Source: Fimbriosthenelais zetlandica
Lineage: Eukaryota
Reading direction: 5' to 3'
Length of the DNA: 64,000 bases
NCBI GenBank assembly: GCA_977030845.1
Contig: OZ365111.1
Location: 45,446,001 to 45,510,000 of the forward strand
This document shows, piece after piece, positions 19,401 through 64,000 of this stretch. The number at the start of each line of letters is the position of its first letter. The first letter of the stretch is position 1. The position numbers and the translations under genes are program-made. The notes below the pieces were generated by a model. The model was not told the DNA's origin. It worked only from the letters and a program-made list of their open reading frames with translations, and did no database searches.

Positions 19401-22400
19401 TCCATCCCGAGGAATTTCTGTAGCAAAAAATGGGGAAGTCATGGCTTACTTGAGAACCACAACGAGTGCCCAACCTCCCATCTCAGGGTTATCCACACTA
19501 TTGCTGCCCAGAAATAGCAATAAATAGTTTGGTGGAAATCAGTGGGGACAAGGGGGTACAAGGAGGGCTTGATTGCCTTCTAGCCAGCCCCATTCACCCC
19601 TATCGACCCACGTCTGAAATATTGGGCGAAAGATTCCGCTTGAAAGGTACTAAAAAATGTTCTGCTATATGAGTAGATCTGCACTGGCTCTCATTGACCC
19701 AGATTTTAGGCAAACCTATTTTAGTCCCCAATCCATCATCAGATAAGTGCACAAGAGGGTTTAGAGCTTTCTTTGCTTTCCAGAATCAGTCTCTTCAAAG
19801 GCAATGTGAATGAAAAAAATCGTTGAAAGAGATTAGAGTTTGTCTACAGTATTGTCCATAAAGGAGTCCTTTAAGTTAAGGATAGCAAGCAATTGAGGTA
19901 GACAAATGGGGCATTTTGCACTTAAGTTACATAATTATTATAGATGACACTAAACCTTATTTCAGGGGTATACTGAACTAGAAAAATTGAACATTTATCA
20001 TTCGTACTGCAACATAAGCATTCTAATTTTAGGCTTTTCTGAAAAATATGAAAGACACCTAATATCAAACCAAACCGAAATGTCATTTTGGTTAAGGCTT
20101 CCTGAATGCCATTTATGGTTCCAAATGTGTTCTACCCGAACAGGGAAACCCCACTAGGGCTCTTTGCCTTTTTGATTCTTGAATTTTTTTTCGCAGAGGT
20201 TTCTTGGAGGTTTCTTCCTTCTTGTTGTAGTGTTGCTACACACATTCAACAACCGAAAGAGACGCAAGTAGTGAAAACCCAATCAGCCTATTGATACCAG
20301 GAAGTTGTATTGAAAAGTCGCAAAGTAAAAATCCTTAGTGGAGTTTGCCCAATATAAGCCGCTAAAACAAATTATCCACACATGGCAAGAACGAGCAAGT
20401 CCTGCACTTGCTCACAAGTGTCATGAAAGAGACTGGCTCATCATTATTAACGTATGTCTCTACCATAAACAACAGGAACTAACTCCTTCCGCCCTGCTTT
20501 ACAGTGCAGAACGAGCCCGCTGAGACATGTCCTCGTGTGCACTGGAAGAAAATGAAGAGCCTCCCTTAAAAGACAGAGCCGATGGCGCTCTAAATTCAAA
20601 ACTACATTCTGGAAGCACTAGTAATTGCTCGGTCTCGCACACCTGAAGAGAAAACTTGATGATTCAAAATGAGAAAAATTCCCCATTTCCTAGGGGAATT
20701 GAAAACAAATCAAACTCGGTAATTAAACTGTCAAGATGGCGGTTTGAAATTAAACTGAATATGAAGCCTGAGATATCTGATGTTACCAGAGGGAAGCCCA
20801 TCATTTCAGTTCAATGAGCCTTCATATTGATTCCATGTCTTAATTGTGCTGTGAAAGGTCAGTGACAAAGCCTACTTGAGTGAAAGCAAACTGCCACAAG
20901 TAACGCTCAACCAGGCATCTGTCTATCTGTTAATGATAAAAGCAGTGGCAATGTGCTTAGGTGATTGAAGCGGGTATAGATCATTAACATATCTCTCTAC
21001 TTGACTGGGCCTCAGTGATGTGGAGGTTGTCTTTGACGTCACCAAGGCAATCAAATCCACCAATCACTCTATATCTTCCTCTTTTATGAAGGAAACCAGA
21101 TTCTATAGTAGGAAGACCAACGATAAGAAAAGCAGAACCCTCTTCTCTCTGCCTCTTGGTAACAACTATACTTTTTAACCCATCTTTTGTATTTTATTTC
21201 TCTCTCCGCCTCAATTCTAAAGACCCAAAGCCAAGAGATCATTTCTGGAGCCTGTCTTTGACAGTTTTAATTCAGTGAGAACCATGGTGGATCATTGACA
21301 GTGGCCGATCTTTTTCTCTCTAACTAAACACGGAGTGTCACTCGTCTATAAAGATTTTACCATCTTTGTTGACGTACTTCCGAAGGAGTTTGCTTCGTTG
21401 TAAGCACTCCGTGCTGAGGAATGTGACTGGGCAATATTGATTTAACAAGCTCCTTCCTCCCTCCTGGTTGTCTTTTATTGTCGGGATTTTCCACAGTAGT
21501 CATGACAATGCCGCTTCCAGTATTTCACCAGCCTCCTCTCAACACTTGGCACAACCAGCTTTTGTGCCTTAAGGCATATATATACTAAAGGTTGACTCTG
21601 GACTATACTGGATGGCATTTATGTGGGTCTGAGGTTTATTTGACAGATATACGTCCTTGATTGGTGGAATTCTCTTCTATCCTTTGGGTTGTCATTTTTG
21701 ACCACTGAATCTAGTCTAGTGGGTCCGGTTTTATTTAAAGCATTGTTATTTTTCTTGATAAAATGGCTTTATAAGGGACCAAGCTCTCCAGTATAGCATA
21801 TGAAGATTTGCTTTTAATAATTTGCTTTCAGTGTTGAAGAAATGTTCAAAAAATGAAATTTTTAGCAATATCATTAGTTGAAATATCGACCAACGATGCT
21901 TGGTGGATGTGCGAAGTTAGGGTCATAAGGACCTACCGAATCTATTCCCTTCTGACCTCTTAACTTCAACATATGACAGTGATTTTTGGCAGACATGTAC
22001 ATAGACACCGCACAAGCGAGCCCAGATGAAGCCATTATTTCCTACAATGGCTCCCTTAAGAAAATCTGGGAATCACACTGCACCTAGTGGGCTTAAGGTG
22101 AACTATATGGAGAGCATCCCTCCGCCTCCACCACTGTTGGTCCTGCTCACAACACAGAAGCTAACAAGGGCTTTCATTGAATTTTCCAGAATGGTTATCA
22201 CATTTGGCTCTGTGCTTTCGCCGTTGTTAATGCAATTTCCATACAAAAGTAATGCGACTGCTCAATATGTCAAGGCAGGTCTTGACTAGGCCTATACTAA
22301 AAACCTACATTATTTGATAAGACGATGAAATTGCTCCACCAGGTTTTATAACTGTTGACAGTATTGAATGTCATCAGTTAATTTGTAATTTTATATTCGT

Positions 22401-22720
22401 GTTACACAGTTAATTCAATCATCATTTTACTGCATTGAATAATTCATACTCCCGGGTCCTTTTCTAACTAGAATTGGACACACTGTCGTGTGATGTATCG
22501 AAGGCTATTTGTCAATTTAAATATACTAGGCCTATGTGTTAATTTAGTAGATTAAGTGATATGTAAATTTCTTTAGTTCCCTTTATTTTCTATGTTGATA
22601 AAATCCCTTTATGATGGTTTAAATCGTCATCAATCAAAAACTCGGACATGATTAATTGATCAGTTTTATTTCATTCAGTCTAGTGATGATTTTGTTGTTG
22701 TTAATTTTGTCTTTTTATGG

Positions 22721-22864
22721 TTAGCGACGAGAATACTCGATCAAATTGTACATATCGACTATTCATGACGATATTTGTCTACTACATTAATTATACATGA
22801 GTAGGTAAAGTAGAACATTCTTTCCTATTCTTGCTTAAAAATTCAAAGCGAAGTGACTAGTATA
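22721..22864 (+). repeat. Copy 1 of a diverged ~140-bp direct repeat (copy 2 at 23999-24142)
   Basis: GAGAATACTCGATCAAATTGTACATATCGACTATTCATGA...GACTAGTATA aligns with 23999-24142. Confidence 0.85.
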
Positions 22865-23222
22865 TTATTCCATTTCCAGAATATGAATTTGTGTGATCAG
22901 ATGAAAACGAGGGAAATAGTCCACGAGCCTCAGGGGGAGTTGCTATGTACACTCTGAAAATATAAAATGTTAAATGTTTGGCTGGATTAGAAATGTTAAT
23001 TGTGAATGTTGAATTTCGAAAAAGAAAATATAAAATAATTCGATTGAAAACCAGTTTAGATTTTTTTTCATTTTGGAATATCAATTAATCAATTAGATTT
23101 ATATAAATAAATCATAATTGAACCTTTCAATAGACTTGATCTTGACAAAACCTATCAATGCCAAGTATATAGGCCTAAGGCAAGGATGAGCCAGCATAAT
23201 TATAATATTATTTATGTCCACC

Positions 23223-23472
23223 TATAGAGGTTTTTCACGAGACGATCCGCCATTTTGGACGTATAGCACTGCACGTCTATAGGGTACATAGGGTACGTCC
23301 AAACAACATTCATGTACTTTGGAAACTTCTAGTGGGTTGTCTACTATTATTTCTAACTTTGTAAGGCAGTTTGTTTGAACGTAGACAACGTCGTAGACGT
23401 GCATTGCTATACATCCAAAATGGCGGATCGCCGTATTATGACGCCTGGGACGTCTCGTGAAAAACCTCTATA
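23223..23472. mobile_element. 250-bp MITE with long TIRs (PHIS superfamily, ISL2EU-like, tentative)
   Basis: Perfect 22-bp inverted repeat TATAGAGGTTTTTCACGAGACG / CGTCTCGTGAAAAACCTCTATA, plus a near-perfect inner pair GATCCGCCATTTTGGACGTATAGCA / TGCTATACATCCAAAATGGCGGATC. Ends read AT|AGAGG...CCTCT|AT. Confidence 0.85.
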
Positions 23473-23597
23473 CATGTGTACCCATAAATCAGTCACACTT
23501 ACAGTTTGACACTTACTTAGACTAAAACTCGGTTCCATATTAATATTATTGGAAAGGCTAAATAGAATCATATTTTTCTTAAACAGCGACGTGTGCA

Positions 23598-23827
23598 TAG
23601 GCCTATGTATCTTAGTGCCCTGAGTAGGCCTAGGACTAGGTCATCGACCAATTTGTATAGGCCTACAAGGTACAACAGTACAATGTTTACTGTATAGTCT
23701 ATGCTTTTAGCTATGACTCATCCTGAGACCTTAAACAATAATAACACGCCTTTACAGAGAATTCAAAGAGATAACATATTATTATAGCTCGAGCTCTATA
23801 ACTTACCTATATGTAGGCCTAGGCCTA
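23598..23827. repeat. Cluster of TAGGCCTA motifs (putative transposon excision footprints)
   Basis: TAGGCCTA at 23598, 23625 and 23658, and tandem TAGGCCTAGGCCTA at 23814-23827. Further copies at 22288, 22528 and 23171. Confidence 0.7.
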
Positions 23828-35044: not shown

Positions 35045-35114
35045 GGGCCTGTTTCAGCAGAAGAATCATTAGCAATGCTAAGTCTATGGGAAATTTTTAC
35101 GCTGAAACGGGCCC
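35045..35114. mobile_element. 70-bp MITE with identical CTG flanks
   Basis: CTG|GGGCCTGTTTCAGC ... GCTGAAACGGGCCC|CTG; 14-bp TIR with 1 mismatch. Confidence 0.8.
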
Positions 35115-35504
35115 CTGCACTGTGGCGCTGAAGTTAGCCACAAGGGCTAGTCATAAAAAAACGCAATACCCACAAGGAATAAAATTCACTGAAGCTACCC
35201 CATTAACAAACCTTGCAACATGTCCCAGTTAGTCGCTTGCAACATGTCTGCGGTAAGTCGCAATACACGTCTACGTATAGACATGTCTACATGGTTACAG
35301 TTAGACATGTCTACATGGTTAGACACAGTACACAGGTACCTTTATCACGGATACAAAGCATACCACATTATACACTGCATTAACACATTAGCATTAGGAC
35401 TCGAGCCCATTGGACATGAATGGCCCTGTTCTGTGACAGACACGCGGTACAATAGCCTATAGTAAGTCTATGGGCTGATATAGCACATGTTTCTCAGGTC
35501 CCTG

Positions 35505-56150: not shown

Positions 56151-57110
56151 ATGGTGACACACTTACCCATCATGGAAACCAATGACCTCACCAGTGACAA
56201 TCCTGGGGACGCTTCAGGTAACCAAAGTAGCATCCCCCTCCGTAAGGCAAGCAGCCTTTCTAGGTTACCCACCCCTCACAGCCCAGTCCGCAGTCCTCCC
56301 ACCACGCCACAACCAAACAACAAATCAGGGATACCTTACGTCAAGTCTCCACTACTGGCCCCCACCACACTGATCCCTCCACCGAGGACAAAAAGAGACT
56401 CACTGCTGCGAGCATCCTCCTCAGTGCTATCTACTAGTACCACATCTCCCTCCTCCTCCCCATCACCCACAAAAACCTCCTATGAGGGCCTCAACTTCTC
56501 ATACTCCACCAAGGCGCAGGCTCCTGCGCCTCCAACCATGATTGCCAACTCATCCTCTTCCTCATCATCCTCCATTTTTTCAAAGCCATCTGTGAATACA
56601 AAACCCCGGAGTCCACTTATTGCTCAGAGACATAGCACCAGCTCGGGAGCAGCTCTTTCTTCTGGTGTTATTTCCCCATCGCCGAGGATGTCGCAGCGAT
56701 CGCCGCCAGCTGTGATGGCCAAGCCGCAAATGAGCCTCAACACCTCAACTCCTCAGAGACCGCCGCGTGAAAGGATACGATCCCATTCACCACCCAAATC
56801 ACCACAGTCAGATCAGGTGAAATCAACCTCCATACCTCAATCTCCACGCTCTCCATCCATCCCCCTGTCTCCACGAGTCCACTCACAATCACCAGTCCCT
56901 CCACCAAGATCGGAAACGTCCAAGCCAAGATCGCCCGTACCGCCAATAAGATCACCGCCTGCCTCCGACACTAAATCGCCACCTCCTCGACGACAGAGGG
57001 TGAGGGAAAGGACTCCTAGTCCTCCACCTACTCCACCCCCATCTACACCACCCTACCGGCCACCACCCCCACCTGAGGTGACCAGAGTGGTGCGGTCAGA
57101 GGCCAGACAG
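56151..57110 (+). CDS. First coding exon (320 aa) of an unidentified Ser/Pro/Arg-rich, probably disordered protein with SxIP motifs
   Basis: 960-bp stop-free GC-richer frame. Acceptor TTTCATTGCTCTAG| at 56143, in-frame TAG just upstream, GGCATGG start context, phase-0 donor CAG|GTGAGA at 57110/57111. No downstream coding exon found in the window. Confidence 0.85.
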
Positions 57111-60100
57111 GTGAGATAGTATTTTGTTATAAATCAAACTTTTACCTCATAATATTCATTAAATACCAAATAATCCCTCATCCGAATCATCCTCTTTTAT
57201 ATGCCTCTGTCTTGTCATTGATACATTCTTTAGAATGTCAGAGACTAGGCTAATTACACCATTATAATTTTGGTCAAATCACCCAGTTGAAAATAAATAT
57301 TTTAAATCGACATTAGTTTTAATTAGGCCTACAAAGCTTGGCACCCCTCGTTGTGTTGCTGCCTAACCAACAACTATATATTTGGCCAATATTTTAATAT
57401 TTTTTCTGAAGCAAAGATATTTAAGCAGTCTATTGGTAAATCATTGTCGTGTATTATAGCTAGCCTAGGTTGCTACATATTGAGATTTTGGTTGGCATCC
57501 AACTTGCCTCAGAATAACTGGCAAAATAGAAGGAAACTGATATTAGTGTTTTTATAATTGCCTGTTTTCCAATGGATGGATGTCTAAGAGTTAAGCAAAG
57601 CCACTTTGTTCTCTTGTTTCTCTCCTCTTCAAAGAACACTTGCTTCCTCTAATTTGTGCAATGTGATAGGTTCAGTTTCATTATGGTGTGCTCAATGTTT
57701 TCACTTTTGCCAACTAGTGTAATTGGGATTTGCTTGCCTGTTTGAGGTCACGTTATGAAAGTGGAGCATATTTAACCAGGATATGAACCTATAGTGCAAA
57801 CAAACTGTCATGATCTGCCATTACTCAAGTCAGGGTTTCTCTTTCAATCAGTCAAGTTTTTTTCTTTCTAAAATTTCAATGTTTGGAATTTTAATGAACT
57901 CAGATGTCAAAAGAAGGCGGGATTTTCTATTTTCCCTCCATTATACGATCTCGAAATGGTTGACATCGTATCAGGTTCGGGCCCATACGGTCTGGTGGAT
58001 TTGGCGATATTTTTTTTACCTTTCCAAAAGCTTTCAATTATCAGTCTCTTCTTAGTTCACTTGTAATTAATGTCCGGAATTTCCAAAGCAGTCCTTTAAT
58101 GTGTCAAGATGGAGATTTTAAAAAATCTTCTTTCACACTAACTTGAGGTATTTGACCTCTATTTTTTTATTTCTACATATTGTCAGTAAATTATTTTGGG
58201 CAAAACCTTGGCCTTAAATTTGCATATACTGTATATCTGCAATAGATCATACAGTATTCTTCAAAATCTTTTCCACCAGAACAAAGGTACATTTGTTTTT
58301 CCTTTCAAAACATGCATGCTACATATTATACAACAAACAGGCATCCCGTGAAGGTTATATTCTCAGACACCCAATCTTTTGATTGCCTATTTTGACAAGA
58401 CAGTGATCTTTGGTTTGGTATTTATGGTCCAGAAACAGAACCATCCATCTTAGAAACATCTGACTAGGTCAGGAGTTTTGTGGAAAGATAGATGTTGGTT
58501 ATAGAATATCTGTATTAACAACAGTCAAGGATCAGCAGGTGAGTTTGTGTACATACTGTCTGTATACTTTCTGATCTCAAGCTACTCTTGGGAATTTAGT
58601 CCAAGGAAGGCTACTTTGAAGTGTCTCGTTAGGCAAGATTCCCCAGTCAGTACTGGAAAGATCATAGCCGAGAAACTTCACTATATGTTGGGACTGGTAT
58701 ACATTTCATAAGCGATTCAAAAACAAGATTGAACTGATAAACTATGAAGGGGTTATAAATTCCAAGTAAGGATGCCACCTTGCCCTTGCTGTTGAATTAA
58801 ATATTTGATAATAAAATCAGATATACGTACATCTGGTACAAGCAGAGTTGGCACATGCTTATCTTGTACAAGACAAGTGGGCTGTTTCCAGTCAGGGTCA
58901 TTCACAGGTCTGAGTGGAAATCCATTAGTACATAACTTCCTTCCTGCTTCCTGAACCCAGCCAGCATGTTAACAATTCAAAACATTGCGCATGAATATTA
59001 TTCCTAAGAAAAGTGCTTCCAATCCCATACAATCTCCGATATTTTTGTAGCTTTTTGCCTCAGAAAAACTCCATGGAAAATTTCTATAAATGTATTCTGT
59101 TTCACTTTTTTTTTTTTTTTTTTACAGAACTTGTTATAGGCCTGTTTGGGAACTTTGTATGATTTATAGCAAACTAAAAAGACATTTTTACTTCCGCTGT
59201 AAAAATCTGGTTCATGAGGAATCATATTTCATACATGTACTGTAGGTATACCCGTTTTCATGGCTGCTCAATTTTGCAACTGAACTGAAAGTAATGTTCT
59301 TGCTAGGTTCTGTAACATCATCCAAAGAACCTATATAATATAGGCTGTGTTAACACGGACCGGGAAAGGTATATAAGCGGTGGGTGTCTATGAGGTTTCA
59401 CTTTAATAAGCATATAGTCATGGCTGGGGTGAGTGTGAAGACCATGACAGCTGTCATGACGGCCAGGCAGATTAATGTAGGTGGGAGAACACCCTGCTCC
59501 CTTCCTACATCACTCATATTATGGCGAGAGACTATACCAGGAATGAAAAATGCCCCCAAGCATTTTTGAACTCAGAAGGTTTATCATTCGGGTAAATCAT
59601 AGTTTGTCGGAGGTACCTGGGACTATATTATATAGATCTATACATGTATTAGGCCTATATGTTTAATTTCTGCTACTGTGCAAATATTCACGAGAAGAAG
59701 CGCATAATATTACGAGAGGAAGCGCATAAGCTTGGAATTGATACGTTTTTGAAAGTTAAAATTTATAAAAGACTAAGAGCAAACTTAGTGATCTTTTCTA
59801 AATGACATTCGCAAATTATAACAATATAGTCAAATAGAAAATATGCAGGCTCTTAAGGACGATAAAAAAAACGTGGGCTTCCTCTTTCAAAACTGACAGG
59901 ATTATTAGATTGATTTTGAAACAAGGTCATTCTATGATGACATCTCTGTTCTGACAAGAGCTCGGTGGGCATATTTCACAATAGAATGATTGTCTGTTGA
60001 GATGAGAGAAAATTACACCTGTTACAGTGTCATCTCATGTGTGACCTCTCCATGGGTATCTAATAATAGGTGAGGAATCCTCACTTATTCTGGGAGCCCC

Positions 60101-60160: not shown

Positions 60161-60715
60161 TAGCCTAGTCGTTTCCGATTCCTTGAGTTGCATGTAGCCT
60201 AATTTTAACAAAGATAAAAAATTAAAATTCATAGCATGCGTAGGCCCTACGTATTTCCACATGGTCACTCTTGCGAGTCATTAGGCAACACAAGGTTGAT
60301 ATATAAATAGGATTTTTAAGGTGAAAATTTTCTCACAAATCAAATTAACGATTAGGCCTACCGAATTTTTTTCCAGAAAAAATAATAGGCCTACATAGGC
60401 TATAGAGATAGGCCTACCTCATAAGATAGGGATATAGGCCTAAACCTAAATGAACCTTTTCTATATCGTTTAGACTCGCAATTTCCAACGTTTTCTTATT
60501 TATTCTGTCTGTGACATATACGTGAGTGGATTCGTAATGTAATGTGTGTTTCTTATGGGTGAAAAGCTCATGTTCAATATAGAGAGGCTTGGAAACAGCA
60601 TTGTTTACAGGACGGTAGGCTAATAGGCTAGGCCTATAGCCTAGGCCTTTAGAACTCAAATAATCGGAAACGATTGCAAAAAGGAAAGATATCCCATAAT
60701 AGGCCTATTAGGCTA
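60161..60715. repeat. Dense cluster of TAGGCCTA/TAGGCTA/TAGCCTA motifs (putative excision footprints)
   Basis: TAGGCCTA x6 (60353, 60386, 60409, 60435, 60629, 60700), TAGGCTA x4 (60396, 60616, 60624, 60709) and TAGCCTA x3 (60161, 60195, 60637) in 555 bp. Confidence 0.75.
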
Positions 60716-60750
60716 TGCTAAATATGCTGAAAATTTACCCATGATCTCAC

Positions 60751-61021
60751 TAAAGCGCGTTCTACACTGCACCGATTTATGATCTGATGACTGATCAGAT
60801 TAAAATCTGATAAGCAAAATCTGCCCCCAAATCGCATGAGATCTGACATGCACAGGTCTATGAGAGAATCATCGCGATGATGATCTTATCTTCATACATA
60901 CGCCCCCTAGGCCTACACATTATGCCGATTTTTAATCTTACTTCAATTTGATCTGATGAGACCGTTAAGATCATGAAACTGCACCCCAGATCGGTGTAGG
61001 CCTAGTGTAGAACTCGCTTTA
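60751..61021. mobile_element. 271-bp MITE (Harbinger-like TIR)
   Basis: TAAAGCGCGTTCTACACT / AGTGTAGAACTCGCTTTA, 18 bp with 1 mismatch. The arms extend to CACCGAT / ATCGGTG once a 6-bp insert in the right arm is removed. Confidence 0.85.
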
Positions 61022-61075
61022 CACCGCAAGAAATCCTCGCCACTTAGGGCCTATGCGGCAAAAATGGGAACTAAA

Positions 61076-61259: not shown

Positions 61260-61504
61260 TCTATTTGTTGCTGCCACCTTGTGCGTAGCGAGTGAACTGA
61301 GCTCCACCTCGCCTTTACTTCAGCGGGAAACCACAAGGTGGCAGCTCTGATCCTAGCCGCCACCATCAGCTGAGCTGAGTAGCCTACATGACTCACCTCA
61401 TGCACCGTCAATATTTACCCTTGACAGAGTATTGAGACGGGCAGAGCTTTATAAACTGTGCGTGCGTGTGGTGTGTGGTGTGATGATGATGATAGCTTTA
61501 ACGT

Positions 61505-62236
61505 CAGTAGGCCTAGGAGAAAATATAGTTGTATAGATCTGGGTGGTGGCGCCACTGTTTTTGTAGTCTGTTTTTAAAGCTATTGATGGTGTCTGCCGTA
61601 ACAGTTTCTTCTGATAAATTGTTCCAGTTATTAACTATCCTGTTTGCAAAAAAATGTGATCTTATGCCAGTTGATCCATGCATATATATAGTTTTAGCCC
61701 ATGTCCCCTGGTCGAATAGGTGTTGTTAAGTTGCTGTATCATCAGTTTGTTGGGACAATCATTAGGCCTACATCGCACATTTTGACAGAAAGAGTTAAGA
61801 CCATGTACCAACTTATATGTTTGTATCATGTCAGTTCTTAATCTTCTGTATCTTAGAGTCGGGAGTTTTAGTCTTTCAAGACGCTCAGGATAGCTAAGCT
61901 CTCTTATTTCTGGGACAATTTTGGTTGCACGTCTCTGCACTCTCTCAATGGCGTCTGCGTCTCTTTTCAGCCATGGGTACCATATACTACTCGCATATTC
62001 CAGATGTGGTCTAACCATGGCTTTGTAAAGATCGAGGAATACATCTGTCGTCATGTGCTTAAAGGTGTGTCTAAGGCACTGGTACCGTTCCATGCTTTGG
62101 CTTAATTTCAGTCAACGCAATCACATCAAACTTATGTACAAATGCTAAGGTCCGCAATTCATCGATTTTACATAACAGTGAATTATCTACATTGGCATAT
62201 ACTGCGTGCAAATTTGATTTCCTACTCTCGTTTATT
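61505..62236 (-). pseudogene. CR1 ORF2 remnant: ~50 aa of endonuclease fused to the ~190-aa C-terminal region; the RT catalytic core is deleted
   Basis: Junction near 62078-62085; 2-nt frameshift in the TA run near 61682-61693; premature stop at the TAGGCCTA at 61508-61515. Confidence 0.85.
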
Positions 62237-62237
62237 C

Positions 62238-63112
62238 TTATTCCACTTCCACCCTTTCCACTATCTGGTCCTGCTTGATGTAATAGGCCTATCCCTCAGC
62301 ATCCTCAGCTGTATCCTCAAGTTTTTTGAACACTCTCTCTGTTTCTTAGTGAGGTCTGGTCTAATATACACATTGTTGTAATAGTGGTTCTGGGGGTCTC
62401 GGAGGTTCTTGGTCTGAGACAAAATCTGTTTCCTGTCAGCTGCTGAGTTGAATGTCACACCCAACAGTCGCGGTCTCTCTCCTACTTCCCTGCCTAGTCT
62501 TGTTGCCTTTGTGAGGAGTGGTTTTAGGTTAAATACGTCTTGAAACATTCCACTAACCTGTGCTATCTCCTCTGCTTCCGTCATATTTCCCGTATCAATA
62601 AGTCCACTGATCACAAGGTTCAGTTTCTTACTTTCAATTTAGGCTCTCTCTGATATTTCTTCTCTCACTATAGCTGCGAGGTTGACTCCACTGGCCTTGG
62701 TCGCCTCAGTCGCTCCCTCCACCCTTGCACTCTCTAGGGCTTTAGGCCTAACCCTTGTATCCAAAGCCATTAGATCCTTTTTGTCTGCCTTCTCCTCCAG
62801 TGCGGTTTTCATTTCAGAAAGTTGTCGAAGTACCTGGTCAAGTTTTTCAATGACTGTATTCAGTTTTGAATTGCCCTGGTCCTGTGTAGTATCTCTGTTT
62901 CCATTGTCATTGTTTGTATCCCGCCCACTCGCCTTACTTGTGTCGTCTGCCTGGCTTCTGTTTACATTGGAAGCGTCCTTGGCTACGGCCCTGGTCGCCT
63001 GTTGATCGTAGGCCTACACAAATTCATCATTCTTAGCCCGTGCACCCCTATTTCTCCGATCTTTCCTTTCTAGACTGTCACTCCTATCATTAGCGTTAAT
63101 TTGATGCGTCAT
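62238..63112 (-). pseudogene. CR1 ORF1 (coiled coil plus RRM-like domain), disrupted
   Basis: ATG at 63112; stops at 63016 (TAG within TAGGCCTA) and near 62640 (TAA); frameshift near 62290 before YYIKQDQIVERVEVE*. Confidence 0.85.
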
Positions 63113-63427: not shown

Positions 63428-63630
63428 TCGCCCTATATGACCAGTCGTTTAGGTCTTGGCCCACCAAATGTTTTATCTCTATGTTTATAGCCAAAAATGT
63501 TTATATTCAAAATATTGCCGCACAACTTACCTGAATTAGGCCTATATAAAGGTAGGTTGACCCTCAAATTTTCGCGCAGCACCAGGTGGTTTGTTTGTAA
63601 ACCCATCCTCCACCACGTGGTCTTTGCAGT

Positions 63631-64000
63631 AACATCTGACCCTTCCATCTCAAGATCTGGCACTTCCTCCCCCAAATCTGATCATTTCAGCTCCAGATTG
63701 GGCCCTTCCCGCTCAATATCTGATCCTTCCTGATGTGGCCCTTCCTTCCCATTGTGAGGCCCTCCCTGTCCAATATCAGGCCTTTTTAGCTCAAAATCTG
63801 GCCATTACATCTCAAGATCTGCCCTTCCAGCTCAAGATCTGACCCGTCCAGCTCAACATCTGACCCTTCCAGCTCAACATCTGACCCTTCCAGCTCAACA
63901 TCTGACATTTTGACGCCATTTCCTGACCAGGATCTGGCCATTTCAGCTCAGGATCTGGCCATTGCAGCTCAGGATCTGGCCATTTCAGCTCAGGATCTGG
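63631..64000. repeat. 21-bp-period minisatellite, running off the window edge
   Basis: CAGCTCAACATCTGACCCTTC units at 63849, 63870 and 63891; GGATCTGGCCATTTCAGCTCA-type units from about 63930; more diverged units upstream. Confidence 0.9.

Follow-up and report, generated by a model that had tools for sequence, protein, structure and literature searches.

A stereotyped GGCC-centred insertion at TA dinucleotides, probably a transposon excision footprint, in 64 kb of the Fimbriosthenelais zetlandica genome

Transposons of the Tc1/mariner type duplicate TA when they insert and leave a trace when they excise: the transposase cuts the non-transferred strand a few bases within the element, and the 3' overhangs at the donor site are sealed by non-homologous end joining into a footprint in which two copies of TA enclose the first or last two to four terminal nucleotides of the element (PMC6943129). 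The footprints of Sleeping Beauty are TACAGTA and TACTGTA (PMC6943129; PMC2874221), and the typical scar of Tc1 is a gain of four nucleotides (PMC13148408). Here we analyse a 64,000-nucleotide stretch of the Fimbriosthenelais zetlandica genome (contig OZ365111.1, positions 45,446,001 to 45,510,000; hereafter the window, with positions counted from its first letter), in which one palindromic octamer, TAGGCCTA, recurs at 26 sites, all of the form TA-GGCC-TA and five of them inside a damaged copy of a long interspersed nuclear element (LINE). An original prediction, made from the letters alone, had taken these five octamers for 6-bp insertions and likely footprints of a DNA transposon. In our assessment the best-supported explanation of these scars, and probably the correct one, is that they are excision footprints of a TA-targeting cut-and-paste transposon with GG(CC) termini. 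This kind of event, an excision footprint of Tc1/mariner type, is already textbook material. What is not known from such systems is a scar centred on GGCC and lacking any known donor, which is the top octamer of its surroundings at about 28-fold excess, which runs in very tight trails and which shows no decay.

The excess of the octamer was large under every background model that was applied. Whereas dinucleotide-preserving shuffles of the window contained 0.88 ± 0.95 copies (shuffle maximum 5) and an order-3 Markov model predicted about 1.2, we counted 26, an excess of approximately 28-fold, and under the same Markov model TAGGCCTA ranked first for excess among all 65,536 octamers. The five LINE octamers named by the original prediction (61508, 61763, 62284, 62743 and 63009) were all found in place, and its base-composition expectation of 0.02 octamers in 1.5 kb agreed with our recomputed value. 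The flank is unlike at each of the 26 sites and a self-BLAST of the window returned no match spanning any of them; each site is therefore an event of its own and no copy of a shared repeat. When all TA-NNNN-TA palindromes, 16 in number, were compared, strong enrichment was seen for GGCC only, which indicates a sequence-specific process rather than a general maker of palindromes. No preference was seen past the TA, the bases outside both TAs being unconstrained and uncorrelated. No TAGGCCTA was found in 20 kb each of two other invertebrate genomes carrying related LINEs, a weak control since 30 kb of the window is equally empty. A second palindrome, TACATGTA (TA-CA-TG-TA), is moderately enriched in the window, with 8 copies against 1.4-2.0 expected (at 1769, 3636, 14521, 33345, 43444, 44368, 59232 and 59641), and has the form expected from TA-target elements with CA...TG ends.

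The five LINE octamers lie in an internally deleted retrotransposon on the reverse strand (61440..63112), which a conserved C-terminal motif marks as putatively CR1-like, as opposed to L2 or Rex1. Its affiliation with the non-LTR (long terminal repeat) retrotransposons follows from homology of open reading frame 1 (ORF1) and of the ORF2 C-terminus, together with a microsatellite-like 3' tail visible on inspection of the sequence (61500->61440). By translation, ORF1 occupies a single frame (63112->62261), and a full-library HMMER search found 1009 relatives of its conserved domain at E<=0.001, the homologues being about 43% identical there. The endonuclease N-terminus, amounting to the first ~45 endonuclease codons (62211->62071), is joined directly to the C-terminal end of ORF2 (~200 codons, 62093->61513), the reverse transcriptase core having been deleted from this copy. 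For the C-terminal piece the database contains 60 relatives, with identities of 36-69% (47-66% among the 16 that were aligned), and where genomic context was available these relatives sit just downstream of RVT_1 ORFs in other genomes.

Whether the octamers are insertions was judged at three sites, for which cross-species homologues or an inverted-repeat arm served as the outgroup. Alignment showed all three to be 6-bp gains at the dinucleotide of the outgroup, which is a single TA at 61763 and 61508 and TG at 60997. At 61763..61770 the scar puts an extra Arg-Pro into a C-x2-C-P motif: where the eight motif-keeping homologues have C-x-x-C-P-x-K-x-M, the window has R-C-(R-P)-N-D-C-P-N-K-L-M, and in the MAFFT alignment a two-residue gap in the homologues coincides with the R-P for which AGGCCT codes. 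The DNA agrees, in that the 924-bp contig encoding the closest relative (L001) has TGT GTG AAA TGC CCT against TGT (AGGCCT) AAT GAT TGT CCC in the window. The scar at 61508..61515 interrupts the last ORF2 codon and splits the conserved C-terminal FSY-stop, so that the window ends I-F-S-(stop-A)-Y-stop whereas FSY is the terminus of its nearest homologues, P0001 and P0008; here L001 has TTC TCG TAT TGA and the window TTC TCC (TAGGCC) TAC TGA. For the third site, which lies outside the LINE, an inverted repeat (60751..61021, arms 60751-60776 and 60990-61021) provided an internal control, the left arm reading CTACAC-TG-CACCGAT and the right arm, when reverse-complemented, CTACAC-TAGGCCTA-CACCGAT.

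The three other LINE octamers were interpreted from translation and from such homologues as exist. At 63009..63016, in ORF1, the octamer leaves the reading frame unchanged and its TAG forms the first ORF1 stop (NDEFV-stop-AYDQQ); no alignable homologue for this N-terminal region was present among the ORF1 homologues found. The octamer at 62743..62750 is frame-neutral and supplies Arg-Pro to the ORF1 coiled coil, RV(RP)KALE. That at 62284..62291, near the ORF1 C-terminus, lies in a frame-shifted stretch, G(stop-A)YYIKQDQIVE, and homologue tails confirm the shifted frame (frame 1, YYIKQDQIVE) as the true C-terminus; the TAG at this site could equally be a mutated AAG. The coding consequences that had been proposed for the five sites (V-stop-AY at 63009, RVRPKALE at 62743, FS-stop-AY-stop at 61508, RCRPNDC at 61763 and, in the shifted frame, G-stop-AYYIK at 62284) were reproduced. 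The central proposal, that TA had become TA-GGCC-TA by 6-bp insertion into LINE coding sequence, was borne out at 61763 and 61508, where alignment with cross-species homologues gave a 6-bp gap relative to a single TA; 63009 is consistent with it.

Since TAG is present on both strands of the scar, an insertion into coding sequence adds two codons and, in one of three frames on either strand, a stop. Two of the five LINE scars add two codons with an in-frame stop. Scars make up five of at least seven indel events in the LINE copy and are locally the commonest indel type, the coding damage elsewhere in it consisting of two frameshifts and one substitution-derived stop. A second ORF1 stop (TAA, 62639-62641) stands opposite Asp/Glu in homologues, SERA-stop-IESKK against SERQDIEARR, and judged from this alignment it is an ordinary point mutation, unlike the scar-borne stop at 63009.

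If the octamers had been inherited from a non-autonomous, internally deleted master copy of the LINE, they would not have been acquired at this locus at all. A deletion derivative needs no intact ORFs, and such a master copy could carry stops; moreover, identity to the best LINE homologues does not exceed 66% and no database record exists for the proteins of the window itself, which leaves room for this explanation. However, the adjoining non-LINE DNA is scarred at equal or higher density, with eight octamers in 0.65 kb compared with five in the 1.7 kb of the LINE, and the locus itself is a hotspot. We therefore regard inheritance as unlikely, and favour an origin of the LINE scars in place. 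Even if inheritance were true, the octamers at 61763 and 61508 would still, measured against the ancestral LINE, be insertions of 6 bp.

The scars are strongly clustered. Two stretches that together make up 9% of the window hold 23 of the 26 octamers. One includes the LINE, an octamer just past its 5' side (63537..63544) and the hotspot in the non-LINE DNA beside it (60161..61052), where eight octamers (60353, 60386, 60409, 60435, 60629, 60700, 60908 and 60997) are accompanied by six 7-mers (three TAGGCTA and three TAGCCTA), two 9-mers (60241 and 61045) and chained forms, among them a TA-sharing chain at 60606-60650. The second cluster (22287..23827) contains nine octamers, including a stacked form, TAGGCCTAGGCCTA, at 23814. 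In both the stacked and the chained forms the TA of an earlier scar has been used again. Each cluster is bracketed by diverged direct repeats, 61101-61259/63234-63392 (163 bp, 77% identity) and 22721-22864/23999-24142 (145 bp, 83% identity); neither pair has octamer sites inside it, and these in-window paralogues gave no extra insertion test.

The spectrum of related products is dominated by the exact octamer, at 26 observed against 0.9 expected. The original prediction had called the octamer and both 7-mers abundant, which holds for the octamer; TAGGCTA and TAGCCTA are only two-fold enriched across the window (14 against ~7 expected), though the octamer clusters account for 8 of the 14, against about 0.6 expected there. 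Both 9-mers of the TAGGCCCTA/TAGGGCCTA type (2 against 0.4 expected) also lie there, TAGGTA/TACCTA are not enriched (26 against 25-29 expected), and the 10-mer TAGGCGCCTA does not occur in the window. Variants one nucleotide shorter or longer that co-cluster with the octamer are as expected of imprecise end joining. Point-mutated forms behave differently from these: single-substitution variants of TAGGCCTA (12 classes, 24 sequences with reverse complements) number 23 against 21.4 expected. The scars are thus undecayed, and lacking a tail of decayed forms they look young, unless they are conserved.

Conservation would be the prediction if TAGGCCTA were a functional palindromic binding site, recognised for instance by a factor that binds as a dimer or by a protein of transposase origin, and kept by selection in regulatory DNA, and the strong clustering would suit that explanation as well. 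Yet selection leaves unexplained why the whole motif arrives as a 6-bp insertion at TA and why it lands in a decaying LINE, creating stop codons, and the one-nucleotide variants in the same clusters resemble repair noise, not constraint. For these reasons we consider a selected binding site improbable. The perfect uniformity of the octamers could also be taken as the mark of an artefact of assembly, polishing or library preparation. This we consider very improbable, given the TA duplication, the unique contexts, the shorter and longer variants, the stacked forms and the grouping of sites in regional clusters in place of an even spread, and no adapter or ligation-junction sequence known to us matches.

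Excision, which we infer to be the cause of the scars, would account for them as follows. An element of Tc1/mariner/pogo type, or of another family with a 2-bp TA duplication, and with ends 5'-GG(CC)...(GG)CC-3', would duplicate TA on insertion. On excision the non-transferred strand would be cut a few bases inside the element, so that a few terminal bases stay behind on either flank as a short 3' overhang, and end joining would then seal TA-GGCC-TA, leaving six bases (GGCC and the second TA) added at the pre-existing TA. With a 4-nucleotide stagger the GGCC overhangs, being self-complementary, could simply be ligated with no processing, and the dominance of one exact octamer would follow from this. 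Two plus two nucleotides from GG...CC ends, or 3-nucleotide GGC overhangs with GC microhomology, would also work, and the data do not separate the three stagger models. Annealing of GGC overhangs through their GC, as favoured by the original prediction, is possible but not required: the 7-mers that are its canonical products are a minority, TAGGCGCCTA is absent, and the 4-nucleotide or two-plus-two schemes are at least as simple. The five LINE scars would have arisen in place, within a local hotspot or trail extending into the adjoining non-LINE DNA.

Several observations weigh against this account. The six added bases can be phased in more than one way (GGCCTA, TAGGCC, or AGGCCT between T and A), and the reading as a TA duplication is not unique; with the AGGCCT phasing, an element without target duplication is formally possible. 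In the 64-kb window there is no TA|GG...CC|TA pair with a terminal inverted repeat (TIR) score of at least 11, and tblastn with one Tc1-like transposase from another genome found no related remnant in the window. With 26 scars and no donor in 64 kb, either a few very mobile donors or donors since lost are required. The distribution is also extreme: when 26 sites were placed randomly on the TA dinucleotides of the window, none of 20,000 trials reached either 14 sites in 3.2 kb or an empty interval of 29.6 kb, both of which are seen here, and this clustering is tighter than any local hopping of Tc1/mariner elements known to us. TACATGTA, the analogous CA/TG palindrome, does not cluster in the TAGGCCTA hotspots. 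Finally, two LINE sites lend the account no help. The coiled coil around 62743 is not alignable to the ORF1 homologues, whose overall identity is no more than ~29-36%, and 62284 is ambiguous, the spacing in its homologues (P-G-K-x-aromatic-x-I-K) being compatible with both presence and absence of the six bases.

Some of these points would be explained if the motif were written independently of excision, either by a nuclease that cuts at TA followed by addition of a fixed tetranucleotide, or by an element without target duplication that leaves AGG/CCT. The lack of a donor in the window, the ambiguous phasing and the very uniform, very local character of the scars all speak for such writing. We know of no precedent, however, for template-free addition of a fixed GGCC, and we think it improbable that the scars arose without excision. 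TA-NNNN-TA is, besides, exactly the form of a Tc1/mariner footprint (PMC6943129). The transposon-footprint reading of the original prediction stands in so far as the scars fit the Tc1/mariner rule of TA around two to four terminal bases (PMC6943129), with the reservation that no donor lies in the window. A stronger version of the excision account is that a transposon with TA as its target, or else a transposon-derived nuclease, is now or was very recently writing identical TAGGCCTA scars in the germline as the dominant local class of small insertion, with very short-range re-insertion and cohesive 4-nucleotide GGCC ends. We put this forward tentatively, judging its chances to be slightly below even.

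The donor search extended beyond GG...CC pairs. The original prediction had reported no donor with TA|GGC...GCC|TA ends in the window, and scans for TIR pairs, for TAGG ends and by tblastn led to the same result. A scan for TA-flanked TIRs with any terminus revealed no GG-ended element in the window, nor was there a recurrent sequence shared after TAGG within it. Other transposons are present. A family of small MITEs (miniature inverted-repeat transposable elements) with the TIR GGGCCTGTTTCA and a 3-bp CWG target duplication occurs near 7534, 30192, 35569, 42785, 43186 and 48688; one 73-bp copy with this TIR (35045-35117) has CTG on both sides, and the word TGAAACAGGC, allowing up to one mismatch, occurs 27 times in the window against 4.65 expected. 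These MITEs match the NuwaI group within the PHIS superfamily, where target duplications are 3 bp, TWA or CWG (PMC4482050). With a 3-bp CWG duplication the GGGCCTGTTTCA MITEs are unable to leave TA-flanked scars, and PIF/Harbinger elements in general were rejected as the source of the scars on duplication length, which is 3 bp (TWA/CWG) as opposed to TA alone here. A 250-bp MITE with perfect 20-bp TIRs (TAGAGGTTTTTCACGAGACG), flanked by TA, occupies 23223-23472 within the cluster at 22287..23827 and is itself scar-free, and a 1.2-kb element at 1964-3184 has 27-bp TIRs (one mismatch) with TA on each side.

Two further features of the window concern DNA without scars. The 29.6-kb interval without TAGGCCTA (27682-57323) ends just after a 322-codon Ser/Pro-rich ORF on the forward strand (56151-57119, no Pfam match), in which a gene may have its final exon. 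At 63634-64000, tandem arrays of 21-bp and 42-bp units (the 21-bp arrays with 89-96% matches) run off the end of the window and are scar-free.

If the excision account is true, one transposon family would impose a sequence-stereotyped mutational signature that can be counted directly from k-mers. The ratio of intact to decayed scars would provide a built-in timing signal, and the scars would record the past positions of the element. Such a locus would also offer a clean natural system for germline end joining at transposase-made breaks, as well as for local hopping over hundreds of bases and for the share of the small-indel load that is due to cut-and-paste elements.

Among the systems with which the scars can be compared, canonical Tc1/mariner footprints are alike in that a duplicated TA traps a few terminal bases and minor variants arise from imprecise joining. 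The scars of the window differ in their GGCC centre, their gain of six bases, their palindromic form, their rank as top octamer and their dense trails. We know of no Tc1/mariner family whose scar is the top octamer in dense trails, and a literature search on the motif and on excision scars at genome scale returned no description of TAGGCCTA scars or of such a family. The footprint of Minos is 6 bp long and made of four terminal nucleotides and TA; the window scars share this gain of six and the TA-NNNN-TA form, which would imply a 4-nucleotide stagger. The ends of Minos are not self-complementary, however, and yield two alternative scars, whereas from GGCC ends simple ligation would produce only one scar, a palindrome. 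In the PIF/Harbinger-PHIS elements the termini begin with GG or GGCC (mPing, with GG(CC) termini, is a PIF/Harbinger-type element), and NuwaI-type MITEs are present in the window, but the scars show TA only, with no conserved third base. In rice, excision of cut-and-paste elements followed by repair has been described as giving rise to small mutations throughout the genome (Wicker et al. 2016, PMC5023962; Roffler and Wicker 2015, PMC4423477). The outcomes in rice are heterogeneous and involve many families, whereas the k-mer spectrum of the window is dominated by one octamer that does not vary.

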